The notes beneath the pieces were generated by a model. That model did not search any database. It saw only the letters and a program-made list of their open reading frames with translations, and was not told where the DNA came from. DNA of 64,000 nt, from contig NC_087258.1 in the NCBI RefSeq assembly GCF_037042905.1, positions 8,246,001 through 8,310,000 of the forward strand, given 5' to 3'. The DNA is from Lytechinus pictus. Taxonomy: Eukaryota. Each line of letters starts with the position of its first letter. Position 1 is the stretch's first letter. Both the position numbers and the translations under genes were made by a program. Shown in pieces: positions 9,909-60,475 of the stretch.

Positions 9909-12900
9909 TTATTTACGAACTACAGCCCATCTCCGTCGAGCAATCAAGAATGCAAAGGTGAGGATGACGATTAAGCAGTTAATGGCGCCAAGAGTTAGAA
10001 ATACTGCTGTGTAAGACCCAGTTTTGTCCTTGATCAGACCTGAGGAATGAAATAAGATTGAAAAATAGTGATGCAACATTTACACAACAATAATACACGT
10101 GTTAATTTTCAATGCGCCTGTGGAGGTGTGTGCGGGTGAGTGTTTGTGGGTGTAAGTGTATGGTTAGTGTGGATGTATGTGGGTTAGGGTGTGTGTTTCG
10201 ATGCGGATACACATTCTTACCAGGGTTCTAGGGTTTGTTTCATTTAAAAAAAACAGATGGCCATGGGAATTCGCATCTTGTCATATGGTACATTAATCAC
10301 TCAAAATTCAGGTTACCAATAAAATGTTTTGTTTTTGTTCTCATTGAATTTGCATTTGTAATATACGTGGGGCCAGGCTCGACTAGCACTTGTGTTATTT
10401 TCTGGTCCCATTTACCATTGTATGTTTCTTACATTTATGTGTAACTATTAAGCAATTTGTTTCATAACCTGTGAACATGTGAATATTGTTGGTAAATTAA
10501 TCAATCAAATCAATGTATTTTACCATAGTAGTTACTTTAATGACCAAATTGCAGGATAAAGATCATTGTACTGCTATATTATACTCAAGCCCAAAGTTGT
10601 TTAATGTTATGAACAAACTATGGTTCTTACCCGAAAGTAGACTTCCAACACTTCCTCCGACGCCGTACATAAAACCAAAAATCCCTGATGCAACGGTGAA
10701 ATTTTCATTGGACACAGACCCCTTGATAAAAGCAGCCGAAGATATTCCAAAGCTGAAGATACACATCCCCTGGATAAATGCTGTGGCACACATAGTGGGA
10801 AAGGATGTTATCAACGGATCGAATAAGAAGGTAGTTGATGACACAATGCCCACAATCAGGAAAAAAAATATGAAGTCAAATTGGAAGAAGAGAACTGTAA
10901 CACATAAAATCCGTCCTAGAATGCCACCTCCACCAGCAATAGACGACAACAATACAGCTCTTGATATCGGAATCCCGTGCCATACCGCTCTTGGAACAAG
11001 GAATAGAATCCATGACTGTACTACGACTGATGCGAAAAAGAGACAGGGCAGTGAAATAAGTAAAAGTGGTTCCCGGATGATAATGGAATCCCGAAGCCAC
11101 CGATATAATCGAACTGTCCAGCCCCGATCTTCGCGATTTTTCGAGGTTGCTCTTGATGATGAAACGTCATCTGACCTATATCGCTCTTCATCCATTGTAG
11201 TCATCATCAAGTCTTCTCCATCACCGTCATCATCTGGATCAATTAACGGTTCTTCCCAACTGTTTCCTTGTTTCTGTGTCTTTGTGGATTTCTGATAACC
11301 TCGCTTACCTGTTCTGGCAGACCTAAGAGCACAACTGGCTGCAATAGCATGCATGCTGATACCTCCAAGGATGAGCATGGAGCCACTAAATCCATAGGCG
11401 TCTAGCGCCCGCTCGATGATGACCGGAACCAGTAATGCACCGGCAGTGCTTCCGAGGTTGCCTATGGCGTTCATAAGTACGAACCTTCCCTGAAAGTAAT
11501 CGTTGAGTAAGACCTTGGTTGGTAGATATCCCATCGACAGTCCAAATCCTAGAGAAGAGAAGAGAAAGAGGAAAGTGGAAAATGTAAGAGAATTGGCAAT
11601 TTTGAACCACAGTTATTTTCTGATCGCATATTAAAGAGAAATTCCAGTAGTTGCAGTAAACACTGATTTCATGAGAAAGTCTGTAAAACCAGGCTTAATT
11701 GTCAGTATATCATCGAGGATCTAGATCTGGTACAGTTACATAAACTGAACTTTGTGAAATATTGATATCTACGCTGAAAAATGTTCAGACTGAACTTCCC
11801 CAACACAGATAAGCGCACGTGGGACTGTGTATAATTATTGCTTTGAGCGTCGGGCCCGACGCTCTACCCGAATCCTGTGCTTATTTGCTGATTTCTCAGC
11901 AATTACACAATTTCTTCCAGAATCCTTTGGCACATGCGTTTTATTTATGCAAACAGACACTTTGGTGGTCATTTCATTGGATTCTGTACGAACTCATTTT
12001 GGTATCGTTACCAAAACTAGCATTTACATTTAAGCAAACATTTTTTACTGTTGTAAGTTCAAAAAACATGTCATGGATACATTAAACTTAGTCGTCATGG
12101 CTAACTTTAATCATCTTGGCAATAAGACAACTATATCCAAAATGTGAATGTCATCAAGGTGATGTAAATCATCTAAGCAAATGAATGTTAAAAAAACAAG
12201 TTTTTAATATACGATAAGATATATTATATTCCCCAGTGAATCGGATCAACCCGAAACTGTAAATGGGGGCGACGCGTCGTGGTCTTGTGGTTAGGAATCT
12301 CGTCTTTCAGTGAGAGGGACGTGGGTTTGAATCTCAGCCACAGCGTGTTTTCCTTCAGCAAGAAATCTATCCACATTGTGTTGCACTCAACCCAGTATAG
12401 GTGAATGGGTACCCGGCAGGATTAATTCCTTGAATGCACCAAGCGCCTTTAGCAGCTGGAGCTACAGCCGGCATGGCCGGGATAATATAATACAGTAGTG
12501 TGCCAATGAAGAGAAAACTAGATGCATAGGCGCCTCATAAATGCTAGGCCTATATATTATTGTCGACAGGGTGATATAAAACATCTCACCAAGTTTATGA
12601 CAAGCCTTCAACAACTACTAGTAGAGTAGGCCTAAATTGCTTTCTACTTTCATTTTTATAAAACCTTTTTGGTCAAATATGACAAATCAACTGGAGACAA
12701 CAACACCACCACAAGTTGGTTGCCACGGAGGAATTTGTCTTTCCAAGCAGACTTCCCAAAAATGGTAAATCGATATTGCAAGATACATGCTTATCAAATA
12801 TCAAGTCGATCCAGCAAAAAATGTCTTACTGGTCCTAGTTTCTTGCCAAGCCGACTTCTCCGAAACTTTAAGTCGACATGGCGACACAGATCTTCTAAAA

Positions 12901-15900
12901 AGTAAATATTTGTAAGCGACAAACTACTTCACATTTTATTTCAAAATATTTAACTGATTTCCATATTTGACCAAAGTAATTCACAATACATTTTGACGCT
13001 TTAAAGTCATGTCAGTTGTTTGACATCAATTTCATTTGATTACTATTTGACAAAATATTAGAAGGTAGCGAAGAATCCTTCATTCAAAGTTTATTCTTCA
13101 TATTTGTCTGTATAAAATTACCTGTTAAAGCAAGACAGAATCCAAGAGCAGTTACCGAAGTCAGATAGCCAGCTATGATGATTCCTGACGATGCCAGGAT
13201 AGCTCCAATAACCGCCATAACACGAACAGATACGCAACTACTCTTCAGTACATACGCCACGGGTAAAGCTACAAGTGGAAAGAGGATATTGGGAGGAAAA
13301 CCATACGAGAATTAATTTTAAAATTTTGAGATGAACTTTAAAGGTATGGTCCGGGCTGAAAATATTTATATCTTAATACATAGAGTACTGAGTAGAATTC
13401 ACTGAGCAAAATGCCGAAAATTTTATCAAAATCGGATAACAAAATGATAAAGTTATTGAAGTTTAAAGTTTAGCAATATTTTGTGAAAACAGTCGTCATG
13501 AATATTCATTAGGTGGGCTGATGATGTCACATCTCCACTTTCCGTTTTCTTATGTTATTACACAAAATCACAATTTTTTCATTATTTCATACTTGTGTGA
13601 ATAATACGTCTCCCTTATGAAATAAGTTGCAGCAATAAATATCTAATGCACTAAATCAGTTATCAATCCAATTTTTCTAGTTCTTGGAGGAAAAAATTTG
13701 AATAAACCTAATTTCATATAATAAAATACAAAAGAACAAGTGGGGAAGTGACATCATCAGACCAACTAATGAATATTCATGACGACTGTTTTCACAAAAT
13801 ATTGCTAAACTTTAAAATTCAATAACTTTGTTATTTGTTATCCGATTTTGATGAAATTTTCGGCATTTTGCTCAGTGAATTCTACTCTATTTATTAAGCT
13901 ATAAATACTGTCAGCCCGGACCATCCCTTTAATAGTGATATATTAGGTTCACTTTATTAAACGAAAGTTAATCGTTCAAATCGGATATGGCCCATAAATT
14001 ACCTATGCCACAAAAGTAGGGAGGGAATGGAAGTTTACCTGATAAACATTTAAAAGAGGAAAAGCAGAGTAACAAAAAAGTAAACACGAGCAAAGAGAGG
14101 GGGAGAGATAGTGCGTGCACTGGCAGTCAGAAAAACGGCCCAGATGGATAGGGGGTAGGAGAGCAATATATATAGAGAGGGAGAGAGGGGGGCAAAGAGA
14201 GGGGGAGAGTGAGAGAAAAAAAAGTATCGAGGAAGAGGGGGTAGAAGAAAATATTTAGTACCCCCCCCCCCCACACACACACCGTGTCACCCCCCCCCCC
14301 CCAACCCATCACAAGTGCCCATTAATAGTTCGGTGAATGCGAGACAGTGATTATTTCATCCACTATAACCAAACCTTTGATATTTTTTGTTAAAAGTCAT
14401 TCTCCTATTCTTTTTCTAAATATATCATTTTAATGCAATGACAAAAAAGGGATCAAATGCCAATTTCCACACTTCTATACTTACAACTTCCCTGCGTCAA
14501 AACACCATGAACAGGCGCGTATCCAGCTTCAGATGCTCCGTTTTATGGGCTCAATTGTCAGGGGACAAATACTCGATAGTGACTCTATTATGCTTCTGTG
14601 CATTAGCCCATACATTTCTTTGTCAAAGCAGATTTACAAGGATGAAAATAAATGGTGGCACAATCCCTTGGGGGGGGGGGGGGGCAAGGAGAAGGGAAAA
14701 GAAATCAGCCCTCATGCCGTAATAACCTTAACAGCGTAATATGAAATGCCGGGAAAATTAACAATTTATTATTTCAACAATCAATTAAGTCCAACAATCA
14801 TATTCGGGAAATTCAGAATGAGAATTTTTGAAGAAGTGTCATGTCAGTGCACAGTGGTTCACTCCTTGCATTATAGATCATATATGATCAAATCAGTGCC
14901 AATTTACTCCTTTTGAAAATAACATATTTGTATTTCCTTGAACCGACGCGTCGGTTCAAGGAAATACAAATATGTTGTAGAATTGTCTTAATTTATTGTT
15001 TATTGTCTCTAGTATAAACCGCCGTTCTACTCACGACTTCAACACATATCAGTGCGCGACTCATAATTCTTAGATATGATGTCCCTCGCTTCTTTTCGTT
15101 TCCTCGCCTTATGAATATTAGGTTCAAAAGGAACATTAACTCAATCATCACAATCTTTGGATCCCCCTACTCATTACATCACTATGAATTTTATTATGAA
15201 TTGAATTGACTCGTAATAATCCATGTGCATAACTATCTCTTGCTTTATTTTATGTTGCCCTGTATACTGTTCGTCTAGGACAGATAACCTGGGCTTCTTG
15301 TAATTGTTTCCTCTTTTATTAATAAAAAATGCTGGATACGCTAATGGTGAATGATTATTACAACCATTGGACGTTACAGCAGGATGCATGGTGGCACACA
15401 AACTCTGAAGTTAGTCGTGTACTTTTGAATATTTCTGACAATCTGTCTTGAGCAGTGATCTTGAATCATATAGGGATCCAACATCATGCAAAAATAAGAA
15501 CATATATTAAGTGCTAATTACAAGGATTTAAGGTTGGATGGAATAGATTTTGATTAACATTCAAGCCACCTTTAGTTTTTCGCTTTGGAGCCCCGCTTTG
15601 TACAACAGATGGGCCTACTAAACTGCTTCCAGACACTTAAAATCAGTGATTCACATGGGTTTTTTTTACATTACAACTTTATAAGCTAATCTCGTACTCG
15701 AAAATTTGAAATTCAATATCGTTTGAACTCACATCCAAACAACATCACCGCCGTGGGCATGCTACACACTAGGCCCAAAGACGATGCGTCCGTGGAAAAC
15801 ACAATTAGCATCGTTGGAATCAAAACTCCTAGCGACTTCATCGTAGCTACCTCAACGAACTGGACGATGAATTTACTCAAAACGATGACGTATTTCCATT

Positions 15901-15940
15901 TATCTTCTGATTCTTGAATGCCCTCCATCTTAGAAAACAT
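9909..15940 (-). CDS. Monocarboxylate transporter (SLC16/MCT-like, MFS), 4 exons, ~467 aa
   Basis: Exons 15940-15733, 13268-13122, 11548-10631 and 10039-9909; all GT-AG, all phase 1, total 1404 nt. Starts MFSKMEGIQESEDKWKYVIVLSKF..., has YFQGRFVLMNAIG, LDAYGFSGSMLILGGI and a long polar central loop, and ends GLIKDKTGSYTAVF...VVRK*. Two blocks of hydrophobic segments as expected for MFS. Confidence 0.9.
12266..12561 (+). mobile_element. tRNA-derived SINE (same family as 44051-44340)
   Basis: GCGTCGTGGTCTTGTGGTTAGG (A box), GGTTTGAATCTC (B box) and body TGCACTCAACCCAG...GAATGGGTACCCGGCAGGATTAATTCCTTG shared with the minus-strand copy at 44 kb. Confidence 0.75.
13342..13928. mobile_element. Kolobok-like MITE, family 1 (TTAA TSD, AGG termini)
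   Basis: TTAA|AGGTATGGTCCGGGCTGA...TCAGCCCGGACCATCCCT|TTAA with ~200-bp imperfect TIRs. Second copy at 33502-34069; fragments near 56417-56640 and 63170-63320. Confidence 0.8.
14921..14976. repeat. Perfect spacerless 56-bp palindrome in MCT intron 1
   Basis: AACATATTTGTATTTCCTTGAACCGACG|CGTCGGTTCAAGGAAATACAAATATGTT. Confidence 0.95.
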
Positions 15941-16614
15941 TCACTGTACTGTCGCTGAAAATGTTGGCATTTAGTTTTAGAATAATTGTAGACCGTATCT
16001 GGTCATACATAGGTAATCCGCCATAACTGATAATACACGATACGTTGAATTCTGTTGACACGTCTGTTTTCGCTTGACCATTGACATGGTTGACGAAATA
16101 TTAACGAGAGATGTGTATATTTATTGAAGTTAGATATAGCACTATGAAACTAACGTTAGCATGAAGGACAGGCGGCCAAGTCAGGCTGCATTCACACCTA
16201 CGAAATTCACAGTCATTACAATGAAATATCCATTAATATACCAGCAATACAATGGACAAAGGGGGGACCTTAAATGGCAAGACGAGATAACTCAATAGTC
16301 CTTATTTGGGTTAAGAACTCATGCATGGTATATAGAAAATGCTATTGTAATGTAAAGCTGCCACGTCCCTCGAAAATGCTATTGTAATGTAAAGCTGCCA
16401 CGTCCCTTGACTCCGAGGGACGTGGCAGCTTTACATTACCATGCATGGGACGTACAGTTTGGCTATTCACAGATAACCTTGGGGTTGGCTGGTCACATTA
16501 TGTCAAATAAATCTAAAAGTAAATTGTTGTACTCAAAATGTTAAAAAAATTCGTTCGCTCGCATTATTTTTTTAAAACTTAGTTGTTACATCCACCATAA
16601 TTTGGCACCCTCAA

Positions 16615-19831: not shown

Positions 19832-21650
19832 CACTGGCGTAAATCCGTGTTGAGGGGTGGGGGGGATGACTGAAATATTTTGGCTTTTTTTTTTTTATCA
19901 TGTTTTTAGATATGCAAGGAATTGTAATTGATATGTCCACAGTGGCATACCGTGGGTCACGGCATTGTGGGGGCACCAGCAAAATTTTCGAATCACTGAG
20001 TGAGCGCGCGAAGCGCGCTCGGTTGCTAGTTATTCTGACCTAATAGAGACATTTTAAGGACAATATCATTGAACGGATATGTATCTCACCCGGGGGGGCC
20101 ACTTCCATTGACGAGTGGATACCATGCGCGACCATGGGGTCTCGAAAAGCACCCTAAACACGTATTTTCCATATTCTGAAACTGATCAAATAATGCGAGC
20201 GCGAAGCGCGAGCTGAATTTTTTATATTCACACCTAAGAAGGGACATTATAATCAAATTTGTGTAATCATGATAGGTACCTGTCTCGCTAAACAATGCGA
20301 GCGCGAAGCGCGAGCTGAAATTTTCGTATATTTTGACCCCAAACAGCGAGATTTTAAGGAATATATTTTAGGAATCCATTAAGAGTATGCATATCTCACC
20401 ATAGTCATCTAATGCAAGTGCCAAGCGCTTGCTGATTTTATTAGAATTACATCTGAACACATGAAACACTTTTTGTACTCATTGCAATCATGATTATCAT
20501 ACGCATCTCACTAATCAAATATTGCGAGCGTGAAGCGCGAGCTGAAAATTTAGATAATTTAGATAATTAAGACCTGAAGTGGGGCATTCTAAGGTTTCTT
20601 TGTAGGAATTAACTAGGACCATACGTATTTCATTAACCAAATGATGCGAGCGCGAAGCGCGAGCTGAAAATTTTTGATATTCAGATCAGAAGAAGGGACA
20701 TTTCAAGGACTGATTTTAGAAATTCATGAAGAGCAGACTTATCTCACCAATCCACTAATGCGAACGTAATCACGGACAGGAAATGTTTCATATATAAGAA
20801 GACCTTAACATGGGGCAATCAATTTTTGAGTCATGAAAAAGAAGCATATGTCACTACATAAAACAATGATAACTCAAGTGCTAGGAAATATATTTTGTTT
20901 ATATTGACTTGAAAACGGGATGTTTCAGTACAACAGGATTATATATCTCGTTAGCAGACAATGCGAGCACCAGGAACTATGAAGACGTAGGCCCTGGGCA
21001 AATTATGTTTCATGAAGTTATGATAAAAATATTTCTTATGTAATGTAACATAACATAATTATAATACAACATTATAATGAATAATATTTTCTTCTTTCCC
21101 ACTACGTTTCTCTTCCTTTCTCCCTCTTTTCTATTTTTCCCCATTTCCCCGTTTTTGTTTTGGTCAGCCGATGGGGGGGGGGAGCATGTGCCCCCCATGC
21201 CCCCCCCCCCCCGTAGTTACGCCACTGTATGTCCATATGGCAAATACCCCTCCAATATTATTATCTTTTTACCCCATGATGGTTTAATTATTTATTAGAG
21301 ATTACATTGAAAAAAAAATTGACATTCCATCTTAATCCCCTCCCAAAGACCCCAACATTGATGAATTGGAAGAAACAGGGATTTCTCTTCAATGTTATAA
21401 TAAGGACATAAGTATTTCGTTTGGAAATGGTGAACTGGCTCTTTATTTGCATTTTATGATTCAATAATATTGTTTTATTTGTTAAGCGGTATTTTAGGAA
21501 GAATTTTCACCAATAAAACAATTATCTCTTGTGATTTTTTTTTTATTTCTTTCGTAAAAAGTGGGGGGGATGTTTGTACAGGCCATCCCCCCCTCCTCGA
21601 AAAGTGGGGGGGATATATCCCCCCCATCCCCCCCGGGATTTACGCCAGTG
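19832..21650. mobile_element. hAT-like MITE (nest level 4)
   Basis: 15-bp perfect TIR CACTGGCGTAAATCC; 8-bp TSD CTGTCATG (19824-19831, 21651-21658). Confidence 0.85.
19940..21227. mobile_element. hAT-like element (nest level 5); same family as 29582-30581 in the opposite orientation
   Basis: CAGTGGCATA...TACGCCACTG; 8-bp TSD TATGTCCA (19932-19939, 21228-21235); GCGAGCGCGAAGCGCGAGC motifs. Confidence 0.85.
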
Positions 21651-23217: not shown

Positions 23218-23378
23218 NNNNNNNNNNNNNNNNNNNNNNNNNNNNNNNNNNNNNNNNNNNNNNNNNNNNNNNNNNNNNNNNNNNNNNNNNNNNNNNNNNN
23301 NNNNNNNNNNNNNNNNNNNNNNNNNNNNNNNNNNNNNNNNNNNNNNNNNNNNNNNNNNNNNNNNNNNNNNNNNNNNNN
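23218..23378. other. Assembly gap (161 N)
   Basis: Run of N. Confidence 1.
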
Positions 23379-24479: not shown

Positions 24480-27400
24480 ATGTCTTTGCTTCGTACTGCC
24501 ATCTTGGTTGCTGTTACAGCATGTCTTATTGCCTACCTACCAGGGTACTTCAAGAAGCCACCACCGATAGTCGTCCACGGCAAGGTAGCAAAGGGGTTCG
24601 AACCAGTTCTCCAGCAGTTCAGGTATCAGCATAATCCTTTTGAACAAGTAATGATATAGTCTGATGTGTGGCCAGAAATTTTGATAAAGAATAGGATAGA
24701 GGGAGTACATGCCCCGGGTATATTTCCTACTATTACTCTCTTATACCCAACTTTAATTTACGGAACTTACCATCAAGTATGTACATTACCATAGTGCTTA
24801 TTGCATAAAACATAGATTTTTCTTTTAACCGTTTAATTTCTGCATTGTAACACCTGGTAATTAAGTGACAGATTCGCATATCTTATCCACCTTTTCCATT
24901 TGTTTATTACGTTGACCATTCACGTACCGAAAGCATGGCAATGACACACTTTCAATCCTGTATCATGGAGTCAGCTTATACATATGCAGGATAAACCCTG
25001 TGCCAAACTTGACTTATAGAAACACGTGTGGGTGGACATTGGAAAATTGTCTAAAAGACATCCAATCAATTATTGTAAATATCTATTTCGTATTGCAAAT
25101 TTGATGATAATACAATTTTTATGTATTGTATTATTCAATTCGTGGGTATGCTTAGCGTGGGGACAGCTGCCCCTACTCCATCATTTTTTTTTGTTACATT
25201 GTTTACAGAAAATTTTCACAAATTTCACCAAAAGTGTGCACGGAATCCTTCAATTTGACTTAAGAAAATATGAAAGCTCCCCGATGAAAAGCCCGATCGA
25301 TTCGCTCCCTCGCTAACTAGTTCCTTCGGGGGGATGCGTCTTCCCCTCTTTTTTCTGGCACTTATCACGCTCATGACGGAGGAAGTGGTAATACAGGGTA
25401 TAGAGAGGAAAGAACCATGAGAACGGCAGTGTCGTTTTAGTTGTGTTCTGTGTAAGAGTATGTTGTTATGTAGATCATGTTTGATTAAGGGAAGACCTCA
25501 AACTGTGCTACTGAAATGTACTGTACATTTATATCGTGATTAATATGTTGAAAATTATCGTTCCCAGCATTTCATCGTTTAATCAGAGATAAACATGAGG
25601 TGAACTAAACTAACAAAATAAATTGGATGTACAGCTTCATAATTCATAACTAAGGGATTCAGTATCCTTTTTTTTAAAACATCATTAGAAAGAACTTTGA
25701 AAGTGGCACAGATACCCGTTATGGAGGATCAGCACTGGCCGTTTATCATAAAGGCAAGAAGATCATTGATGTCTGGGGAGGATTCGCCGATGTAGAGAGT
25801 AATGTAGAATGGCGGGAAGACACGATGACTGTCGTTTTCTCTGCGACAAAAGGTTAGATACAGAAGGTTGTTTTTGTACATGTAAAACCGAAAGCAATGA
25901 TCATGTGTGTTTGTTGTCTCAAATCTTTCTGTCATAAGTCCAACATTCCTTCACCCTATAGAAGCCAAAATCAAGGCTGGCATCTTCCATTAAAACTAAA
26001 CAAGATATTCCAGTTAACTGTCGGTCTTGTTGCGTGGCCCTAGGAACGACTTTTTTTTTTTACTGGGGGTGCTGATGTAAATTTGAAAAGCAAAAAAAAA
26101 GGGGGGGGGGTTCACTACAAAATGGAGGTCAAATTGGTCCAGAGATATTTGAAAAGCCAAAATTAAACAAACAAAAAAGTTTCACTAAAAATGAAGGCCA
26201 TTTATTTACATTTTTGCTTTTTTACACTCCTTCCAAAATACCTAGGGCTGCTTCCCAGGTCCATGTCTTGTTGGTTCTCAAACCAATGCTCTAAGTTAAA
26301 AGAACAGAGCCTCATTTTATTACATTTGTATAGCTTGTTTAGGGCCTGGGCAATATGTTGACATCTTTTTTATCCTCAGGAAAACTCTTTGCGTCCCTTT
26401 GTGTACATGAAATAAATGTAGTAGTCTTCAGACAGGAATTGGAGTTTGACCTTTGTTCCGTTTGCTCTTTACACGTGTCAATAGATCATGAAGATTGGCA
26501 CAGTATAGTCCATTCAGTTCATGTGTTGTGATCGATTGAAATTGTTTTCAAAATCTACGGTGCGTGCACGTAAATCTTCTTTTATCCGTCAGCCGCCTTC
26601 AGAAATAATAAAGAAATACTATTGACCATTCAACAATGACTGGCATTTTTTCTTTGAAGCCAAACAAAGAACACACACAATAACCTTAAGTGCCTTCAAT
26701 ACAGCCCGTTTGAAGGACCTTTTGAACGCCATTGGTTGATTTGAAAGAAAAAAACTCAATTCGTTATTATGAAATATCTTTCGTGTTAAACATACTCATG
26801 CATAATACTATATCATATATTACAATAATATAATTAGAAGATTTGATTGAAATATCACTATGACTATGTATATGCTGCTGATGGTTGATTATAAAGATAA
26901 AGACGATGGCGATAAAGATGGTGACGATGATGATAATAATGGAGACTATGGCGATGATGATGATAACGATTAAAAATGATGTTCATGAAAATGTTGTTTA
27001 TAATTGTAGGTATTGCTTCAATTTGCATCGCCATGTTGGTTGACAGGGGTTTATTAGATTATGATAAACCTGTATCAGAATACTGGCCAGAGTTTGCACA
27101 GAAGGGAAAAGGAAAGGTCACCGTCCGACAACTCATGGAACATAGGGTCAGTTCTAGATAAATAATTTTCTTCTTTCCTTTTTACCATTATCACGTATTC
27201 GACATTAACATTCAGGATAGCTCTCGGGTTTGTGACCTACTCAATCTTGCCATGCAACAAAGGCTAACAAGAGGAGTGTTTTTTATCATGCCGCAGACAT
27301 TATAGACAAAAGATAGCAGTGATTCCTGATATTGGGCCACTTTTCCTCAGCGTCTCGCCAAAGACTAATCACTATAATAAGGAGCATATGAAGTTTCCTT

Positions 27401-30400
27401 CTAGGCAAAGTTTGATACCATGACATTCTTGTCGAGGCAGTCAGGCCCACTGGTCAGACCAAAGAGATATCACCTCTTTCCTTGGTCAGACAGACATAGA
27501 CCACACAATGAAACGTCTTATAACCGTCTCGGGAACGAGACATTCCTCAAAGCACTGACACCATGAAATGTTTCTTTTTTTAATTTTCCATTTTCAACAC
27601 GGTAAATAATCATCATCTAGAAGACGTTGAATTTGTTTGCTCTAATACAGTTTTGTGGTTCATTTAATCATCATCCGACCTACACAGGCTGGCCTGACTC
27701 TCATGTCGCCGCCCGGTATGAATATTGAAACCCTAAGTGATGTAGCCCGAGCAGGGGAGTTAATGGCGACGGCTGAACCTCAGTGGGAAATTGATGGAGT
27801 GAAACACGGTTACCATGCCCTTACTTTCGGTCCTCTAACCAACGAGCTTCTCCGTCGAGTCGATCCTCAACATCGCACAATGGGGCAGTTCTTTGCGGAA
27901 GAGATTGCAAAACCTTTAGGTAAATCCTACCCTTACATTACGCTATGTTACCATTGCAACCAGTATTCATTAAGCCATCCATACTGTATGAAAATCCGAA
28001 TGTTTTCAATTATTGGTAGATCTATTACATGTTCGTTCATCATGCTCATCATCCATATTTAGTTGACATAAACATTTACCTGAATAATTTTTTTTCCATC
28101 GTGTTAAAAGTTATGTTCTTTTTGTATTGATTGTATTTATAATTGTATCTTTGTTTCTATAATACGCTATACTAAATTTCTACGTAGGATACATTTTCAA
28201 TTCACACCTAGCCAGGCAACTATGTATTGTGTTTTTACAAGAATACTTTTTGCGTAAATATATTACGTAATTTTATACATGTCCAAGATCTAGATCTAAG
28301 ACAGTGTGTCATTCTGATTTTGTTATCCTGTCAATACTTATTTTGATAAATGAAAATAAATGAAATAAATAAGTAAGTAATTCTTTTCCCACATCACACC
28401 ATCATTGTGATCATTAGAGTGGGCCCCGATGTGCGTGCTTCTCAGCCAATCAAAAAAAGCTTTCAAAGTCAGATCCGACAACTTGTAAGTCGATGAAACG
28501 CCCACTCTTTATGACGTGTTCGCCATGACAGGTGGATTGGACTTTCACATCGGACTACCGTTGGATCAGAAGTACAGAGTTGCTCGATTGATTGAAGGAA
28601 AGATTGGGAGACTATGGGGTCTAGACGATCCTACTATACGACAGATGACATTGCATTTCTTGCGGACATCATATTTCAGCAACATGAAACAAAATCAAGA
28701 AAGTATCCTTTCCACAGTAAGTAATTTTCTTTTACTGCCCACACAAAAGAACCCACAAGCTCTGATATTATTTTTCAAGCATACATTTGTACAACACCAA
28801 ATCAATCACTGACTAAATTTAAAGGGATATTTTTGCTTTCAAGATGTCCCACGATGATGTTCTGCATGCATCTGTCCCTTCCACCGACGCCTTCCAATGC
28901 TTATGAAGTCAATTTGAATTTGTCACTTGAATACAAATTATCAATGGAAATCTTAATGCTGATCGATTATTTGATATTGTGTATCCAGTTGTATTCACAT
29001 TGTTTCATTCATTTGTGAGTTGTAAGATTAAGTTGGGCTGAATTTCACGTATGGCTTTCTTTTATTTATTTGGTTTTAGCAAAAACTGCATTATAAAGGT
29101 AAAACAAATACTTAACATAGCACATAAAGTAACGCACACACTGAGCTTGTGATTCTAGAACTTTCAACAATAATAAACATGATAAAGTTCGAGAAAAAAA
29201 ATTTGTAAATGACTAAGAGAATCAAATATGATAAAGATCCGGATATAATATAACACTCCTATAACTACTGCTTTTGTTTTCTTTCTAATAGCTGGCATCT
29301 TTCAACAATCCCTATTTCCAAGCTGTTGAACTTCCCTCGGCGAATGGTATTGGGACGGCTCGGGCTGTCGCGAAGGTAAATCAGGGGTGGAGGGGTAGTC
29401 GAGGGCCGATCGCCACATCCCCTATGATTTTCATGTAGTGAAATAAAGGAAAAAAAGACGAAAAGACGAAAGAATTAAGATTATAAACCTATGATATATT
29501 ATCATTTAGTAATCTTAGTATTTGACGAATTAATTTAGTCTCCCTGTTGGTGTACTCATAGCTATAGGCTACATGTATGACCAGTGGCATAACTACTGGG
29601 GGCGCCCCCCCCCCCCATCGGCTGGTCAAGAAAAACAAACTGGAAAAAGGAGAAAAGGGAAGAGAAACGTAGTGGGAAATAAAAAAATTATTGTGCATTA
29701 TATTATTATATTGTGACATATATATATATATTGTATGTTATATTACATTAATATTTTTTCATAACTTTATGAAACATAATTTGCTCAGGGCCTATGTGTT
29801 CAACGTTCCTAGTGCTCGCGTTGTCTTTTTAACGAGATATATAATCCTTTTGTACTAAACATCCCGTATACACCAAATACACCAAATATATTTCCTCACA
29901 CTTCGAGTTATTGTTTTATGTAGTGACATATGCTTCTTTTTCATGACTACTTACAGTGATCGCCTCCTTTTAAGGTGGATTGGTTAGATATGTCTCCTCT
30001 ACATGAATTCCTAAATTCAGTCCTTAAAATATCCCTTTTTCTGATCTGAATATCAAAAATTTTCAGTTTGCGCTTCGCTCTCGCATCATTTGGTTAGTGA
30101 AATACGTATGGTTTTCATGAATTTCTACAAACAAGCCTTAGAATGCCTCTCTTTAGGTCTTAATATTTAAAAAACTCAGATCGCGCTTCGCGCTCGCAAT
30201 ATTTGATTAGTGAGATGTGTACATTAATCATGATTACAAGGACTACAAAAAGTACTTCATGTGTTTAGATGTAATGCTAACAAAATCAGCAAGCCTTGGC
30301 ACTCGCAATAGATGACTATGGTGAGATATGTATACTAAAATGTCCGTTTGGGGTCAACATATACAAAATTTTCAGCTCGCGCTTCGCGCTCGCATTGTTT

Positions 30401-32576
30401 CGTTTAGCGAGACAGGTACGTATCATGATTACAAAATTATGCTTATTTATAATGTCCCTTTTTAGGTCTGAATATCAAAAATTTCAGTTTGTGCTTCGCG
30501 CGCACCCACTTAAGAGACTCAAAATTGTTGCTGTTGCCCCCCCCCCCCCCCTCCAATGCCGTGACCCAAGGTTCGCCACTGTGTATGACCCGCTTTCATG
30601 AATTATGTTTCCTATTTTTATTTCTCTTTAAATGTCATCGATATATTTCGTTGTATTATGTTATTCAAGTTGTCCTCCCCCCCCCCCCCCCCGTGTCACG
30701 TCTTTTGGATGGTTACGTTAAAGGTCGGTCCCAGACGTAAATAATCATGTCTGATTGATACACGTCTGACAAAACTTAATTGTAAATGCTTACAACCTCC
30801 ACCCCCCCCCCCCCCCAAAAAAAAAGTAATAAAATAAAAATACCCATGCAGACGCCTAACGGAGGGGGTTACTTTTTATAATTGATGAAGATCGACAGCG
30901 GTCAAGCTCATCTGCAAGACAACATAAAAAATCACGGCATTTAACGGTACAGACTCCGTCTCCTATTTCTCTACCCAGATCTACGGGGTTTTAGCAGCCG
31001 GTGGTGTTGATCCAGAAACTAAGACAAAGCTGATGTCAAAGGAAAGGATTGATGCATTCATGAATGCCGTTACTGTCACACCAGATGAAGTATTGGGTCT
31101 TGACTTAGCCCACACTTTGGGAATGGTGACAACCAAGTATGTAATGGTAAGTGCTATTTAAAGGACAAGTCCACCCCAACAAAAAGTTGATTTGAAAAAG
31201 GGAGAAAAATCCAACAAGCAAAACACTGAAAATTTCATCGAAATTCAGATGTATAATAAGAAAGTTATGACATTTTAAAGTTTCGCTTAATTTCACAAAA
31301 CAGTTATATGCAAATCCTGGTCGGTATGCAAATTGGCAAACTGATGATGTCACCCACTCACTATTTCTTTTGTAGTTTGTTATATGAATTATGAAATATT
31401 CTAATTTTCTCCTCCTTGTCAAGTGAAACAAAGTTTTATTTCTCCCTGAACATGTGGAATTACCATTATTTTACCAGTTTATGGTTGAGTTAAGTTGGTC
31501 TTTATTGTCAAATCTGTAAAACTTGAAATATTGTATTATTCAAACAATAAAAAACAAAAGAAACAGTGAGTGATGGACATCATCGACTCTCTCATTTGCA
31601 TATCGCTGAGTTGTGCATTTAACTTTTTTTTTTAAATAAGCGAAACTTAAAAATGTCATAACTTTCTGACTTTACATCCGATTTCGATGAAATTTGCAGC
31701 GTTGTTTGTTTGATTTTTCTCTATCGATTTAAATCAACAATTTTCTGGGGTGGACTTGACCTTTAATTATTGGTAAGCCGGATAGTTCTGTAATTAATAT
31801 TTGAAATTATATTCCATAGATGCACACATGTGTCATTTCTCCCTCTCAGGCATTGGTCATTTGGGGATCGAACTGTGTGTTGTTTTCCCATCTGCTCATT
31901 GACTGTGTGTTATGAACTATTATTATTACAGGTGGACTTATTACACGACTACACTGCTCATAATGTTGCACAATTTTTTGATTATTTTTGTATTTTTATT
32001 TTTTATTTCTTTTTTTTGCTTTTGTAAGGAACTATAATTATGTTATATATGTTAAATATCGAGTACTACCCCTACAGATAAAGGCGCTAACAAGATAAAA
32101 CTGAAAATGAATGAGATGAAGAAATTGTGTTTACCACTTATCAAAATCATTTCATTTATCTTTTGGGGGCTGGGTTGGGGGAGACTACCTAGTTGCCATA
32201 CCAATTTGGATCAAACTAGTCAGATTGATTATGTATACATTCTGTGTTGTGGTAAAAAGAATGCTTTGCCTGTGTCAGTGGATTTTATCACCTCTACCGT
32301 GAATTAGACAAACTAATCATTTTGTATTGGTGAATACTCTCTTCAATCATATCTATGTACATCTTTGTTCTCTCTCTCTCCGTCTAGAACGGATCGATAA
32401 TGGGATTCGGTCATGAAGGTGCAGGCGGTCAGAAGGCGTGGGCTGATCCTAAGAACCAGATCGGATTTTCATTCGTCAGCAACGCGCTGTCTCCTTATAC
32501 GTATAACGGAGATGTCAGGAGCCAAGATATAACCGAAATTTTGTATGAATGCTTAAGAAAAGAGAAGTTGATTTGA
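24480..32576 (+). CDS. Beta-lactamase domain-containing protein 2-like serine hydrolase, 8 exons, ~433 aa
   Basis: Exons 24480-24622, 25689-25852, 27010-27146, 27688-27919, 28532-28716, 29292-29375, 30979-31146 and 32388-32576; GT-AG, phases consistent, 1302 nt. N-terminal hydrophobic signal/anchor MSLLRTAILVAVTACLIAYLP; catalytic SxxK (FSATK); YWPEFAQKGK; HGYHALTFG; ELPSANGIGTAR; FGHEGAGG. Confidence 0.92.
29582..30581. mobile_element. hAT-like non-autonomous element in intron 6
   Basis: CAGTGGCATAAC...GTTCGCCACTG; 8-bp TSD TGTATGAC (29574-29581, 30582-30589). Confidence 0.85.
30695..30777 (+). mobile_element. 5'-truncated copy of the SINE at 58041-58226
   Basis: GTCACGTCTTTTGGATGGTTACGTTAAAGGTCGGTCCCAGACGTAAATAATCATGTCTGATTGATACACGTCTGACAAAACT matches 58124-58205 with about 4 differences. 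Confidence 0.85.
31162..31762. mobile_element. Kolobok-like MITE, family 2, 15 nt downstream of the exon 7 donor
   Basis: TTAA|AGGACAAGTCCACCCC...GGGGTGGACTTGACCT|TTAA. Confidence 0.85.
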
Positions 32577-34069: not shown

Positions 34070-34474
34070 TTAAGTCATACTTAAATATTTATGAACCCCC
34101 CCCCCCCCTGGAATCGACTTCTCTTTGAAGCTTACGATTTCCTTGTAGTTCATCAGAGACATATTAGTTTTTTTTTATCCACTCTAACGAGAAGGAAATT
34201 GAGGAGTAGAGAGAAGGAGACAATATCTCTATGTAATAATTGCAATCCTTTTGTGATATTGACATCATTTTTTATGTGCCATATCTTTTATATTAAAGAA
34301 TATTTGTTAATGAATGTACATCGATTTAATTCAAAGATAATAAAGAGCGGAAAGTGATTCTAGACGGTTGTTTATTTACATTGTCTGTGTTTTATCATGC
34401 GGGATGATTGGAAATAGAGGATAGAAAATCATAGGGCCATCGGAGGTAAGAGGAAAATAATCACATGGCATAAT

Positions 34475-48224: not shown

Positions 48225-48979
48225 AAATAAAACAAGAAGCTTACGTCTACACGATTGCTAATTAATTATTTTTAAAATATTTTTACGATTAAGAGATGTT
48301 AAACATGTTAAAAGAATGTATTATCCCCGTACATCTTGGCCTTCTGGGAAAAGCGCAGTATAAGCAAAAAAGCAAAAAAAATCATTATACTTTAAAAACC
48401 ATGTCGTTACAAATTTAATTCGTATCCACATTTTACGCCTGTGTGGGTCGGGGTTCGGGTGCGTGTGTTTATATCATTGTTTTAGATTTAACAAACGTGT
48501 AGCAAGCAGATATGTTTATTTATACAATCTACCGTAATAGCGCAATTGTAGTGTTTATTTTTGTTAAAAAGATGTTTTTCTTCACCCATGGCTGAATAAA
48601 TGCCACACAAAATATCACCAACTGATTAAGAGTGAAAATATTTACAGGATGCATAAAAGCCGGTTATAATTTAATGTGATTTTTCGTAAGAAACCTTGTC
48701 AAAGCTCAGCGCAACGTCTTTCCCCGCAGGAATCCGGCAAGCAGCTTTTTATTACCAATCAACGCATTTCATTAAGTATGATGATGAATGTGGAAAGCCG
48801 CAAATAAAAGACGCGTATTAGCACGTGGTATCTGCTGAAACACATCGCACTGACTTTAGACAAGATAACTAGAAGAGTTCAACTCTAAACACTTTTTAAA
48901 TCAATTAATAGAGTGGAAATGAACATTTCATATTCAAAATATTTCACCATCCTCTCATTATTCTCTCCCCCTCATGCCC

Positions 48980-51360: not shown

Positions 51361-54300
51361 CTACCATTGGAGAATCAGAAAACCAAAGATTATAGAGAGA
51401 AAATACAGAACTTTGGAGGAAATCAGAATGATGCCGTTGCCTGTTGTCATGGTTGGGTTTGGTGGTTCTGAGAAAATATGAAGAATATTTAAAACTTCTG
51501 ATTATTACAGACGGTAGTGAAAGTTGTTAAGAGTTCGATGCACTATGCAATTCACTTCATTCATATTGCCAAATTTACCTCGAAGGGATTTTTTTTCTTA
51601 GTGCTTGCACAAGAGGACAAAACTGGTTAATATATATAATTTCATATTTCAGGTTAAAGTTCGTAAGAAAGCGAGGACAAATGGGTCGAAAACCAAAAGA
51701 AGAAGAAGAAAGAAAGAAAAATAAGGAGAAGAAGAAGAAAAGTAGAAGCAGAAAAAAGAAGATGAAGAAGACTTATAAGAAGAAATAGAGATAAAGAAGA
51801 AGAAGAAAAAGAAGAGGCAAAAAAGAGGAAGAATAAAGGAGAATAAACAGAAAAAGACGAAGACGAAGAAAAATAAGATAAGAAGGACATTTGAATACAA
51901 CCTATTGATATGGACAATCGCATTCCAGTGTTCTCACTACGTTCCTAAAACTAGTTTACTGGAAACTAGTTTAGTGGAAACTAGTTTAACGCGTAGTGAG
52001 AACGGTCGAAGCGGTCTTTGAAGCGATCTTCCAAACCAGTTTGGAAAACCACCTCGCGATGTAGTTTTCAAGATCGCTTTGCCTCGTTAAACTGGTTTTA
52101 GCGTAAGTGAGGACACAACCGTTCTTCGGGAAGCGATCTTCGCACATTTTGAGCGCGCTACTCCACACGACAGGTGTAGAATGCCTATGCTGCGGTTTCG
52201 AATTTCGCGCGAAACGTGTCACCCCACTGAGAGCGTTTCCATAGCAACAAGAGCGCTTTATGTGAAGTGATTTTGAAAACCACTTTCGTGTGATCATGTA
52301 GGTCCATGGTGTGATCAAGTGGGAACGCTAGCAAAGCGATCTTCCAAAGTGGTTTCCTGAATCGGTTTCCAGTAAACTAGTTTTAGAAAGCGTAATGAGA
52401 ACGGCCTCATATGTGTGAGTGACCTGGGTCCCGTAACACAAAGGTTTGCGATGAATCGCGAATATGAAAGAACCGCACTGATTGGTTCCCGGTCAGATCT
52501 TGATTGGTCATTGGTATTTAGCGATTGATTGCAAACCTTTGTTTACGGAGCCCAGGAGAGCGTTTCGTCTACATGTATATTTCGTCCGACAAGTTGTCAG
52601 ATCTGACAACTTTACTTGATTTTGATTGGCTGAGAATCACGGTTACTATGGTAACTGTCGGATAAAACAGACTTTGTCATTTCGGAGCCTTTAAAGTGCC
52701 ATCGACTTGACGACTTGGCGAGATCCTTTATCTTGCCATGTCGACATAATAACCTGATTATGTCGACATGGCGAGATACGTTATCTCGCCAAGTCGACTT
52801 GTAAAAAGTTATGTGTCGACATGGCGAGATATTTTATCTTGACAAGTTGACTTATAAAAAGGTATATGTCAACTTGGCGAGATATTTGGACTCTCGCCGG
52901 GCCTCGGACATTTCATATCTCGCCATGTTTTATAAGTCGACTTGGCAAGATCTCCCCATGTCGACATAATAAGGTTATTATGTCGACATGGCAAGATAAA
53001 GTATCTCGCCAAGTCGTCAAGTCGATGGCAGTTTAAAGGCTTCGTATGTCATATATGTCGTCCGACAAGTCCTTACATGAAACACTCACCAGGTTTGTAT
53101 TAATTTTTGTTTACAAGCAGATGTCTAAATCTCAAAACGTCTAACACCATCATGGCTAAACCCACTTGATCTACTTTTCGCATTTTGCCAAGTGAAAATT
53201 TAGTAAATAAACGGCGTATCTAATAGAATAATAATGATTCTTAGTTACCCAGGATAGCCAATTCAGGTTATATGAACTGTTCTCTCAGCATACAACGCAA
53301 TAATATTATACCCCTTCTCTATTTTAATATGTCGAGAGCCTACAAGAAGGCAAAATACAAAGGGGATCGAACACACGACCTCCTGTTCATGAGGCGGACG
53401 CTCTACCACTGAGTCACTGTGTCCGGTGGTATGTGGTGTGCAGACATAGCGATATGGCACGAAGTGGTTTTGCCTATCTTGAAATTGAACAAAATTGTGA
53501 ATGGGCCAATGGAAATTAGAACGAATGGTATCTCGGGATAATAATAGTATAGGTAAATTTACCCAGGGTAGCCACTTCAGTTTCGAAAAATGTTCTACCA
53601 GCGGGCCCTGCTATTATTAGACCATGATTTGGGATAAGACCAAACGCAAAGTAGAAACTGGGTGTTTAGACCGAATGGCAATTTACCATTAAGACGTGGT
53701 GGGGGTGCGGTGGATGGAGAGGGGGGGGGGGAACATACCTGTCGTGGACATGGTGGACGAGTCATTATAAACCTCGTAGAGGGAAATAGTTCCGCTTACT
53801 GTACTCGTAACCATCAACATAGGCACTCCTGTTACGCTCTCAGATACAGGAATAAACCTTTAGAAACAGAGATGAATGAAAAATAACTCCTCCTCAATAT
53901 TTTATTTACCTTTTAAGGAATTGAACAGTCTTGTCTTAATTTATATAATGTTTACTATGAAATATCAACCTCTTTTATTTAAATTGTAGCAAAGTACTAA
54001 AAAGGTTCAAGACTCTTTGGCTTCAGCAAAGGCCCACAGGTCCATGTCAGTTTCATTGATGTCGTGCACCCTTTTCCTCAGAAAATTTATTGAAATAATC
54101 AGGAAAGTTTCAATACTTCGTATTTCCAATTTGTCAAAGCATTGCATTTCAAAACAACATAATAACAAGGAAACTGCTTTCAGATGGTAATTTCCCAAAA
54201 TTTTCTTCAGAAATATTGCAGCATTTACTTGAGATCTTCAGGATCGAGGTCGCCCAGGTTGCGATTGTCAAGAAGGTTTTGGAACGTATCATCACGACCA

Positions 54301-55848: not shown

Positions 55849-58040
55849 CTAATAAGAAACACACCAAACGGAAGTGGATATGAAATTCATAATGAACATA
55901 ATTTTCTTTCGTATTGTCAATCCAACTAAATCATGCAAAATCAATTGATGAATCAAGAACATAAATATCAGAAAATTGTCAGTCTGTTTAATAGGTTATT
56001 CATTATTCTACCATAGTAATCAGCTGTACAAAGGTGCGTTCGCAGGCAGGGCACTGGGGACGATTTTTTTCTACTGGGGGTGCTGATGGAAATTTGACAA
56101 GAAAAAAAAACTATTTAAAAAAAGGTGCACTGAAAAATGGAGGTCATTTTGCTCCTGAGAAATTTGACAAGCAAAAAAAAAGAAGGGTTTCAATTGAAAA
56201 ATGAAGATCATTTTTGTTACATTTATCAAATTTTTCACACCTACCTGAATTCCAGGGGTGCTGCCTGTGCAGCCTATGGAGAATAATACACGCAGCACCC
56301 CTAGCATGCACCCCTCTTCACAGGGCCATGTCATCCTCGGTGGTTATATATTTCTTTTCAAATGCTGTGTAACCATTATGCTGTAAACACTTGACACCGA
56401 TTATATATATTTATCAAAGGGGTACTCTGGGCTGAAAATAGTTAAATCTATGTTAACAAAAAGTAATAAATAAAATTTCACTTTGCAAAACGCAGTGTCA
56501 TAAGAATGGCATAATCTGATAATAACAAAGTTATTGATATTTTAGTTTAGCATTGTGAAAACAGTCATACGTAAGCAGTCATAATACATAGGTGGGCTCA
56601 TGGGGTCATGTTCCAACCTTCTTTTTATGTTACATGGAATTGAAATTATTTGATGTTTCCATACAATCGCCAATAGGGAGGGGAGGAAAACAAACTTTTT
56701 TTCCATTTCATTCCGTAATCATGATAAAGGATAAGTATCTTCCTAGATAAATTATGCGAGCGCGAGCTGAGAAAATTAATATTCCGATCTGAAAACGGGG
56801 CAATTTAACAGGAAATAGATCACACCATTTCAATTGATTGATTGATGGCCAATAAATGACATAAACAAGGAAATAAATTAAATATTTTGAATACATGATC
56901 TCATCTTATAATCAGAGGGGATGAATGAACAGGTCATCCCCAAGTCCTGAAATAAAAGGGAATTCCTTGCAGATTTACGCCCATGACTGAACGTGAATAA
57001 ATATAATTTGCACCACTTAACATGAGTAAATAGATAGCAATCTTGTTAGCTGAACCTGACTACATGCTACTTAATACAAAAATTAGGATGGAGAGGTTTC
57101 CTGATGTGCTCATTATCTTTGTTATATCAAGAAGATTCTATGACTGGAGTTTCCTGTTTCCTGAAATGCTCATTATCTTTGTTATATCAAGAAGATTCTA
57201 TGACTGGAGTTCCAACAGGCAACACATTTATTCAAGCAGCTGTTCATTTCTAAAGAAGCACACAAGATAGAATGGCAGTAAAGACCTTTTTGATGTCCGC
57301 CTTCGAAGCCGCCAGTTTCAGCGAAGAAATCAGAGGAGTGAAATTTTACGAATATCCATTTGTATAAATTTTCCATCTTTGATATTAATAAACAAACTGA
57401 AAGTTAAACGCATGACAAGACATCAGTAGCGAAGCACTATTACCAGGATTACACTGAGATATAGGCCCAGATTATATCAATTAACCTTTAATTAGTGAAA
57501 AAAGTAAGAATTTGACCTTTTACTGAAACCAGCTTTTAACACTTTTCCGATCGTTTGCGGCAAATGAAAATTTCAAATGTGGTCGGTAGAATATTGCTAT
57601 TCATTATTGTATATGCCAGACGAGTGCCCGCACATGCCCAGTTGAGTAAATTTGAGTCATATTTCAGGACATATTGCATAGTTTATTTTCGCATGCCTCC
57701 GAATTATGTACTTCACATATAACCAGACCAGATGCGGCGAAAAGTAATTATCATCACAATAGCATATTTCCCTTTTTATATGACCTATAGCTGCGGGAAT
57801 CATTTGTCTACACAATTGCAAGAGATGTTGAGCAAAGTGCATGCCTGACATATACTTTCTGCTGGCGGTTTTTAACCTTGTTCAAAGGGATTCTTTTTGT
57901 TGTTACTCCATCTCAATTGAAACCTCCTTGGTTATATGATTGAATCATATCACATAAAACTTAATCAAGTTGTAGGAAATGCATTGTAGTTTACGGACGT
58001 AAAGAATATAAACAATACAATCTTGTAATTCTAGTACCCA

Positions 58041-58226
58041 ACTGGGCGTTGTGGCGTGCGCCTGTAATCCAAGCTATGTGGGGAAGTTACAAATTGATGC
58101 AGAGATTCGAGGTTCGATCCCTGGTCACGTCTTTCGGATGGTGACGTTAAAGGTAGGTCCCAGACGTAAATAATCATATCTGATTGATACACGTCTGACA
58201 AAACTCAAATACACACACACACACAC
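58041..58226 (+). mobile_element. SINE with 7SL/Alu-domain-like head, B box, Deu/Nin-like core and (CA)n tail
   Basis: ACTGGGCGTTGTGGCGTGCGCCTGTAATCCAAGCTA matches my recalled 7SL 5' end at 28/36. GGTTCGATCCC at 58111. Core TTTCGGATGGTGACGTTAAAGGTAGGTCCC. Second copy at 30695. Confidence 0.75.
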
Positions 58227-58704
58227 CATCTAGAGTGCCATTAACATTTTTCGTGGGACACGCTGTAGTATAAAGTTCATGGTGTTAGGTCAACACCACT
58301 GGCGTATTATAACTCTTTCCATTTGACATTTTAGCACTATAGGCTTGCCTTATTTAGTGTCACGTTCAAAATCCACGGTGCATACTAAACCGATTGATTC
58401 TACAAGCACTATAGAGTGGCCTGTCTACATGGGGGTATAGCAAGGAGATGCTACCCCCCCCCCCCCCACCCCCATCGAAAAATAAAAACATACAAAACGT
58501 GAATGTGGAAAGATTGTGAAAGTAGATTAAACCAGTGACAAACACGGAGAAGAAAATGGGCAGACCACATGGGCGTGGCCCTTACCTCACACACCAACCT
58601 CGCTCCTTCCTTCCAAATTGATACAAATAAAAATACATCTAAAGAAATAACATTGTCATTACAAAGCCTTTCGCATACAAAAATTTAGCAGTTGAACCTG
58701 AAAA

Positions 58705-60475
58705 TGTTTTCCCTTCAAAGAGAAGTCAGACCGCCAATTTAAGAAAAACCATTGGTTTAACAATGATCTAAAGAAGATGTGTAGGAAGAAAAATATCTTG
58801 TATCGAAAATATATAAAAAATCCAACTGAATATAGAAAAATAACTTATAATAAATATATAAATAAAGTAACTAGTGCAATACGGCAGTGCAAACAATTGT
58901 ATTATAAAACTCGTTTTTATAATGTACAGAATAATATCAGAAGAACATGGAACGTAATCAATGATCTGTTGAATAAAAAAGGCAACAGTACAACATATGA
59001 CTATCAATCATTTTGGCAGAAACGTATCTGATTGCAAGGAAATTGCAAATTTATTTAATAAATATTTTACAACTATCGGACTAGACATAACTAATACCTT
59101 GCCACAATCTTGCTGTACTTATGATCATTTCTTGCCACCCCAAAATTTGTTGAATTCATTTTTCCTTAGCCGCATACAACCTAGTGAAATAATTAAAATT
59201 GTGTCTGAACTTCAGCCAAACAAAAGTCCTGGTTATGATGGCATTGATTGTAATGTTTTTAAAAAAGCAATTCATCTTTTAGTCACACCTTTGTGTAGTA
59301 TTTTTAATTTGTCAATAGAAAAGGGAGTTTTCCCTAGTTCCCTAAAATTAGCCAAATGTGTATCCATATATAAAAAAGGGGATAGATCTGTATTATCTAA
59401 CTATAGACCAATTTCTATCCTATCTGTGATTTCTAAGTTATTGGAGAAACTTATACACAAACGGTTATTGTCATATTTATTTTACAATAATATTATATCT
59501 AAGAAACAGTTTGGTTTTAGACCCAATTATTCTACCTATATGGCATTAATTGATTTTTGTGATAAAATAGCGAATGCATTTGAAAATAAGCAATTTTTCA
59601 TTGGGATCTTCTTAGACTTATCAAAAGCTTTTGATTGTATAAATCATGACATTCTTACAGAGAAAATGAAATATTATGGTATCAGAGGTCTTGCTTTAGA
59701 TTGGTTTAAAAGTTATCTTTACAATCGCAGACAGTATGTACATTTCAATAATTATTCATCCCCTATACAAAACATTAATATTGGTGTTCCTCAGGGATCT
59801 GTTTTAGGTCCTCTACTTTTTATTATGTAAATAAATGACTTACATTTTATTAGTAATATATTAGATTCTGTATTATATGCAGATGATAGTAATTTTTTTA
59901 TAACTGGAAATGATATACAGAATGTCTGTGCAATACTAAATGGGGAGTTGTGTAAGATAGGCCAGTGGTTTTTAGCTAACAAGCTGAAACTAAATACTGA
60001 CAAAACATCGTGCGTGGTATTCCACACAATGTATATGCGACAGAACAATAATTTGTATGTACCAAATTACAAATATAATTTTTCTCGATCAACCGTTAAA
60101 TATTCTGGACCGAGTATATGGAATAGCCTTCCTAGTAGCCTGAAATCTTGCCAAAGTCTTTCGACTTTTAAACGAACATTCAAAAATTTTCTTCTGAACT
60201 TATATTGATTTGCCTTATCCGTTCCTCCCCCCCCCCCCTTGGTTTTCGTTTTGGTAAATCTTTTGTGTTATAGGGATTGACCTTTGAAAGGTCTTGAGGC
60301 CTATTGTTAATCCCACCACTTTCTGTTAATATTTACTATATTTATAATGTACCCTTTTGTATTCACGTTTGAATGTATTTTTTAATGTTTTTTTTTATGT
60401 GTTTTTTTATGCTATTGTACCTGTATTTTTACCAGATTGTGGAAATAAATAAATCTAAATCTAAAATCTAAAATA
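58705..60475 (+). mobile_element. 5'-truncated, decayed LINE (CR1/L2/Crack group) ORF2
   Basis: RT motifs KSPGYDGI, NYRPISIL, QFGFR, FLDLSKAFD, GVPQGSVLGPLLF and YADD (59876-59887). Frameshift near 58997, TAA at 59828, internal deletion near 60030. C-terminus GPSIWNSLP..FK; tail AATAAATAAA(TCTAAA)n. Confidence 0.92.

Follow-up and report, generated by a model that had tools for sequence, protein, structure and literature searches.

The stretch analysed here, referred to as the window, is 64,000 nucleotides of the painted sea urchin Lytechinus pictus (assembly GCF_037042905.1, contig NC_087258.1, positions 8,246,001 to 8,310,000, forward strand). It carries a monocarboxylate transporter 2-like gene at 9912-15940 (-), whose four exons match the L. 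pictus protein at 100% and whose large exon lies at 10563-11534. Additionally, it contains an assembly gap of 161 N at 23218-23378, an exon of a second beta-lactamase-like gene at 27655-28062 (+) and, at about 2.6-8.7 kb, a beta-lactamase-like gene placed by synteny with an L. variegatus locus. A tRNA-derived SINE with a Deu/Nin-like core at 5791-5823 is found inside this latter gene at 5638-5940 (+). The element considered below lies at 58039-58226 (+), and is followed about 550 nt downstream by a 5'-truncated, frame-broken LINE fragment at 58777-60208 (+) with an RVT_1 domain and a C-terminal WNSLP...FK..LK motif. The closest database relatives of this LINE fragment are 67-78% identical and sit on short ENA contigs.

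The element at 58039-58226 is a 188-nt composite SINE copy, well below the 1 kb limit of the SINEBase definition (PMC3531059), and it is interspersed and non-tandem as that definition requires. It consists of a GC-rich head (58041-58088) that resembles the 5' part of the Alu domain of 7SL (SRP) RNA, a bridge (58089-58133), a short core motif (58128-58161), a 3' stem-loop (58161-58197), and a tail (58197-58226) that reads GACAAAACTCAAATA followed by a (CA)8 microsatellite at 58211-58226. The preliminary description of this locus had placed the start at 58041, but the element probably begins two bases earlier, as both full copies known to us begin CAACTG. Every other feature listed in that description, including the 7SL-like head, the B box, the core, the tail and a truncated copy elsewhere in the window, was found in the sequence, and the observation itself is confirmed. 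Its figure of 28/36 identities to the 5' end of human 7SL was not re-examined against a human sequence.

The Rfam model Metazoa_SRP (RF00017) matches 58041-58135 at 30.9 bits, with an E-value of 1.7e-6 for a search of 351 bases (57950-58300) and 3.1e-4 when the whole window was searched against all 4227 families. This score is far below the Rfam gathering score of 70 because only model positions 1-48 are truly matched, with posterior probabilities near 1, while the remainder of the alignment is full of non-pairs. Hairpin-type chance hits with similar E-values occur in the same window: sub-threshold hits to plant or animal microRNA precursor models at 52720-52894, 14911-14993 and 16386-16437 (E 3e-4 to 1e-2) are most likely inverted-repeat or low-complexity hairpins and show how weak window-wide E-values of this size are. 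We therefore also aligned the head directly to the printed Rfam consensus, to which it is identical at 37 of 45 positions in register from position 1. None of 20,000 random Lytechinus 52-mers came near the score of this alignment (null maximum 36, observed 57).

The first 48 nt fold on their own into the two hairpins of the Alu-domain 5' part, and both the covariance-model alignment and the predicted minimum-free-energy structure reproduce the GGGCG/CGCC helix, the UGUAAU turn (58063-58068) and the UCC...GGA hairpin. Helix 2 is formed by 58041-43 paired with 58085-87 and is closed by A-U, C-G and U-A pairs, helix 3 by 58044-51 paired with 58056-63 with the loop UGGC, and helix 4 by 58068-70 paired with 58082-84. 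In the SRP Alu domain the two loops contact each other, and of the residues involved, by our reading of the alignment, G13, G14 and C34 are kept in the head while C37 is U. The preliminary description had named a better match to a tRNA D-arm than to the host's 7SL as grounds for rejecting its reading. ARAGORN found no tRNA in the window and the Rfam tRNA model gave no hit on 57950-58300 even at E<=10, although the same model does hit the control SINE at 5638 (13.8 bits at 5642-5713). The head is thus not tRNA-like, and only the B box and a T-arm-like hairpin further downstream recall a tRNA. A convergent or chance resemblance, in which the head descends from a tRNA, an unknown Pol III gene or an older AT-rich head, could be argued from the short 47-nt similarity, the sub-threshold score, the commonness of box A-like GC-rich hairpins in Pol III genes and the partly similar, non-7SL-like front end of older relatives. 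Given the number of identities in register, the two hairpins, the turn and the loop residues, we consider this very unlikely.

The bridge forms an imperfect T-arm-like hairpin carrying a perfect Pol III box B consensus, GGTTCGATCCC, at 58111-58121, about 70 nt from the 5' end. A box A-like segment, GGCGTTGTGG, lies at 58045-58054, at the position of the 7SL/Alu box A, and matches the human 7SL box A GGCGCGGTGG, as quoted by Kojima 2020 (PMC7245038), at 8/10. There is no run of four T inside the element, and a T5 run in the 3' flank at 58247-58251 is a possible Pol III terminator for this copy. These are motifs only, without transcription data, so that the presence of a working internal Pol III promoter is neither supported nor opposed by more than sequence likeness. 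The core motif TCGGATGGTGACGTTAAAGGTAGGTCCC at 58128-58161 matches 5791-5823 of the tRNA-derived SINE at 82% over 34 nt (blastn, E=0.003). It was not compared with the published Deu/Nin-DC core consensus, and a match of this length leaves membership in that superfamily undecided.

The 3' stem-loop has a 7-bp outer stem, CAGACGT/ACGTCTG, and a 6-bp inner stem, and is more stable than shuffled sequences (z=-2.3), whereas the predicted fold of the whole element is not (z=+0.3). It is presumed to be the recognition element for the reverse transcriptase of a partner LINE. A similar hairpin containing ATCTGATTGATAC and followed by (CA)n ends an unrelated repeat fragment at 15678-15730 (+) of L006, one of the sea urchin loci fetched for comparison (see below), and may be the 3' end of the partner LINE family. 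A stem-loop with a (CA)n tail is of the type used by stringent LINEs, but no LINE with this 3' end was found, and the evidence on a shared LINE end therefore points neither way. The adjacent LINE fragment at 58777-60208 was rejected as the partner because its 3' end has no similarity to the SINE tail.

Within the window there is only one head, but a 5'-truncated copy of the same young family, comprising the core, the stem-loop and the start of the tail, lies at 30695-30779 (+) and is 94% identical over 85 nt to 58124-58208 and 95% identical to the L. variegatus copy described below. An old tail-only fragment covering the stem-loop region (81%) is present at 48480-48522 (-), with no reverse-transcriptase ORF next to it. 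Target-site duplications are not evident at either full copy: the window copy is flanked only by TCTAG, 6 nt off the 5' end, and none is seen at the L. variegatus copy. The truncated copy lies between two C-rich direct repeats (18/19) that resemble a 19-nt target-site duplication. Similar tracts of the form CCTCC(A)C12-15, often followed by an A-run, recur next to the ends of transposable elements (window 30674-30692, 30796-30815, 58452-58476 and 60224-60237, and 25624-25654 of L007, introduced below), so this reading is uncertain and the question of duplications stands undecided. The origin of the tracts is unexplained.

To find further copies we fetched about 260 kb of sea urchin DNA through paralogues and orthologues of the transporter gene in the window (loci L001 to L008). 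One of these, L007, surrounds the L. variegatus orthologue of the window's gene and holds a near-full copy at 25691-25860 on the minus strand. This copy starts with the same CAACTG and has the same head (34/45 to the 7SL consensus, also beyond all random controls), bridge, core, stem-loop and tail, the latter with (CA)5. The two copies show 164 matches, 3 substitutions (1.8%) and 3 indels, whereas orthologous non-coding blocks of the two species are only 72-88% identical. The stem-loop is identical in both, and the one change in this region of the truncated copy falls in the loop. At box B the L. variegatus copy has GGTTCGAGCCC, as do the old type A relatives discussed below. A 7-nt indel removes the 5' strand of helix 3, and probably for that reason the covariance model does not report this copy. 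Its flanks do not align to the window, and the L. variegatus orthologue of the 58-kb site was not examined, so no empty site was compared.

These are thus two independent, recent insertions of one conserved master sequence in two species. Occurrence of the head at a single locus had been named in advance as a result that would undo the interpretation, and the L. variegatus copy removes this objection. It likewise contradicts a one-off product, such as a chimeric retrocopy made by template switching or a 7SL pseudogene interrupted by a SINE insertion, for which the single head in the 64-kb window would speak. No further 7SL sequence lies after the tail or anywhere else in the window, and we regard this possibility as most improbable. 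Contamination with human Alu or an assembly chimera is less likely still. The Alu-derived model mir-1268 also hits this stretch, at 28.6 bits, but the head is seamlessly joined to a sea urchin SINE body, occurs in two independent chromosome-scale assemblies of two species and differs from the consensus at about 8 of 45 positions.

Only two head-bearing copies were seen in about 325 kb, and copy number was not measured. Indirect support for many copies comes from DNA sequencing runs of only 4-67 million letters, which still hold about a tenth of the sampled words of the 901-base locus, and from many RNA runs under three organism labels, which hold 57-64% of the sampled words of the SINE. Scans of metagenome, genome and viral contig collections with a 21-mer of the SINE body returned 0 hits each, those collections holding no Lytechinus DNA with this element. 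A protein search through the ORF that runs across the SINE body only gave no candidates, searches for representatives and homologues of the reverse-transcriptase fragment gave no Lytechinus loci, and exact look-ups of the flank ORFs, intended to catch other haplotypes, found none on record. The other fetched loci (L001-L006 and L008) contained no further young copy, only old relatives.

The body of the SINE is older than the head. Relatives sharing element positions 57-149 at 70-76%, which we call type B, lie in the 5' regions of tandem MFS transporter genes in both Lytechinus species and were duplicated with them. Another relative, type A, lies at L001:15278-15416 with a paralogue in L001, and has an orthologue in L. 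variegatus, so it predates the species split. Old relatives of the body in the 5' regions and first introns of these genes were found at L001:15278-15416(-), L001:~10743-10880(-) and L002:~15129-15270(-), and at L002:10388-10481(-) and L004:10390-10460, 19857-19951 and 34293-34389(-). Alignments to relatives in L001, L002 and L004 run from element position 57 onward, so the bridge is shared with elements that have another front end. No relative of any type was seen in 60 kb of Strongylocentrotus purpuratus, which is too little DNA to conclude absence.

The type A front end is nevertheless co-linear with the young head (29/51 identical, 9/11 in the first 11 nt, GTAAT kept, p about 0.003 against shuffles). 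It is not significantly 7SL-like on its own (25/45, p about 0.07, no Rfam hit), and it carries an unrelated AT-rich 12-mer where the young head has the 3' strand of helix 3. The data therefore fit two histories. Either 7SL sequence was grafted or converted onto an older SINE, or the 7SL-derived head is old in this superfamily and its helix-3 half was lost or overwritten in the type A/B lineage, without a recent graft onto a foreign body. The second history gains some support because type A agrees with the 7SL consensus at two positions (9 and 37) where the young copy does not. The AT-rich patch, however, is shared by all three type A copies and seems present in type B, so it was in an active master and is not just decay. 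We consider this second history unlikely, but given the partial identity of the type A front end to the head, the history may not be a simple graft.

We favor the explanation, with a probability of roughly 0.7, that this is a copy of a young composite SINE of Lytechinus sea urchins whose 5' ~47 nt derive from 7SL RNA, namely helices 2-4 of the Alu domain with the UGUAAU turn, joined to the rear of an older SINE. What the analysis itself establishes are the motifs, the predicted folds, the conservation of head and 3' hairpin between copies and the 5' truncation of one copy, while the steps of the life cycle are inferences. In this view RNA polymerase III would transcribe a master copy from the 7SL-type box A-like segment and the tRNA-type box B and terminate at a T-run in the flank. 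The 5' domain would bind SRP9/14, bringing the RNA to ribosomes where LINE protein is being made, by analogy with Alu. The 3' stem-loop and (CA)n tail would then be recognized by the reverse transcriptase of a stringent-type LINE that inserts the copy by target-primed reverse transcription. No transcript start and no protein binding were shown.

The preliminary description had proposed an independent Alu-like origin in which the SRP9/14-binding domain replaced the 5' half of a tRNA head, and this interpretation is only partly supported. A dispersed SINE-type repeat with a 7SL-like, non-tRNA-like 5' end in an invertebrate is supported, but it was not shown that the rest of the head is half a tRNA, and the partial homology of the type A front end complicates a clean replacement. 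No 7SL gene lies in the window or in the fetched loci, and descent of the head from the animal's own 7SL gene was not examined. Our literature searches for an invertebrate 7SL SINE, or for strings of the element, found nothing, although Repbase and Dfam were not compared and Nisson et al. 1988, on a sea urchin Pol III repeat, was not considered. Described 7SL SINEs (Alu, B1, Tu, Urop and SINE1-1_EBu) are reported only from supraprimates, a shrew mole and hagfish, and all keep both ends of 7SL after a central deletion of about 183 nt.

The closest described case is SINE1-1_EBu (Ebu1-1) of the hagfish Eptatretus burgeri (Kojima 2020, PMC7245038), which like the element proposed here lies outside the supraprimates, was born as a chimera of a 7SL-derived head and an older tRNA-type SINE, and has a conserved body, a LINE-derived tail with a microsatellite and a non-L1 partner, although for the sea urchin element the partner LINE is only inferred. 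It is a young family of a few thousand copies. The hagfish head holds 96 nt of the 7SL 5' end plus about 45 nt of the 3' end, forming a full Alu domain, and uses 7SL-type boxes A and B, and the element has an RTE-derived tail with (AAC)n and makes ~17-bp target-site duplications. The sea urchin element has only ~47 nt of 7SL, a tRNA-type box B, a stem-loop/(CA)n tail and no clear target-site duplication. Alu, B1 and relatives of supraprimates, and Urop of the shrew mole (Kosushkin et al. 2026, PMC13023118), share with it a 5' end corresponding to that of 7SL with helices 3 and 4 and the UGUAAU turn, a box B about 70 nt from the start, and presumably a role in SRP9/14 binding. They arose from 7SL with a ~183-nt central deletion and so keep both ends of the Alu domain, are mobilized by L1 through a poly(A) tail, and many are dimers. 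The sea urchin element lacks the 7SL 3' part, has no A-tail and is a monomer.

The left unit of tree shrew Tu type II/III is of dual 7SL and tRNA origin (cited in PMC13023118), so that there too one promoter-bearing unit is built from both kinds of sequence. It belongs to dimeric or trimeric mammalian SINEs that descend from the common supraprimate 7SL SINE, and its junctions were not compared with those found here. The tRNA-derived sea urchin SINEs with conserved cores, such as the copy at 5638-5940 and Repbase SINE2-n_SP, share the short Deu/Nin-like core motif and the host genome, but their head is tRNA-like and their body and tail differ. The minimal 46-nt 5' Alu domain defined by Moldovan, Yin and Moran 2024 (PMC11760393) is the same piece of 7SL and almost the same length as the sea urchin head. 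In HeLa cells it is necessary for Alu retrotransposition, associates with SRP9/14 and can promote a round of retrotransposition, although it was studied as an engineered deletion construct driven by a Pol II promoter and dependent on L1. The sea urchin element is natural, and neither its binding nor its mobility was assayed. Its identity to 7SL (about 82%) exceeds the 60% required by SINEBase, but the overlap of ~47 nt falls short of the required 60 nt, and without the 7SL 3' end it also lacks one defining feature of SINE1 as described. It would work like a 7SL-headed SINE, but differs from the described ones in keeping only this 5' piece and using a tRNA-type box B.

7SL-derived SINEs are among the most successful mobile elements known, with Alu making up about 11% of human DNA, yet independent origins are described as extremely rare, and those described are all in vertebrates. 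A sea urchin family with only the first ~47 nt of 7SL would extend the phenomenon to invertebrates and to a different type of LINE partner, and would match in nature the minimal domain recently defined by mutagenesis of human Alu. It is somewhat more likely than not that this represents an independent origin in an echinoid, in which only the minimal 46-48-nt SRP9/14-binding domain was grafted onto an older SINE body mobilized by a stem-loop/microsatellite-recognizing LINE rather than L1. If so, the element would be a natural deletion experiment, showing that this small domain alone is the selected functional unit, whichever LINE partner is used. The long-standing idea that SRP9/14 binding and ribosome docking are what make 7SL heads advantageous thereby becomes directly testable in a second, distant system with good embryological tools.
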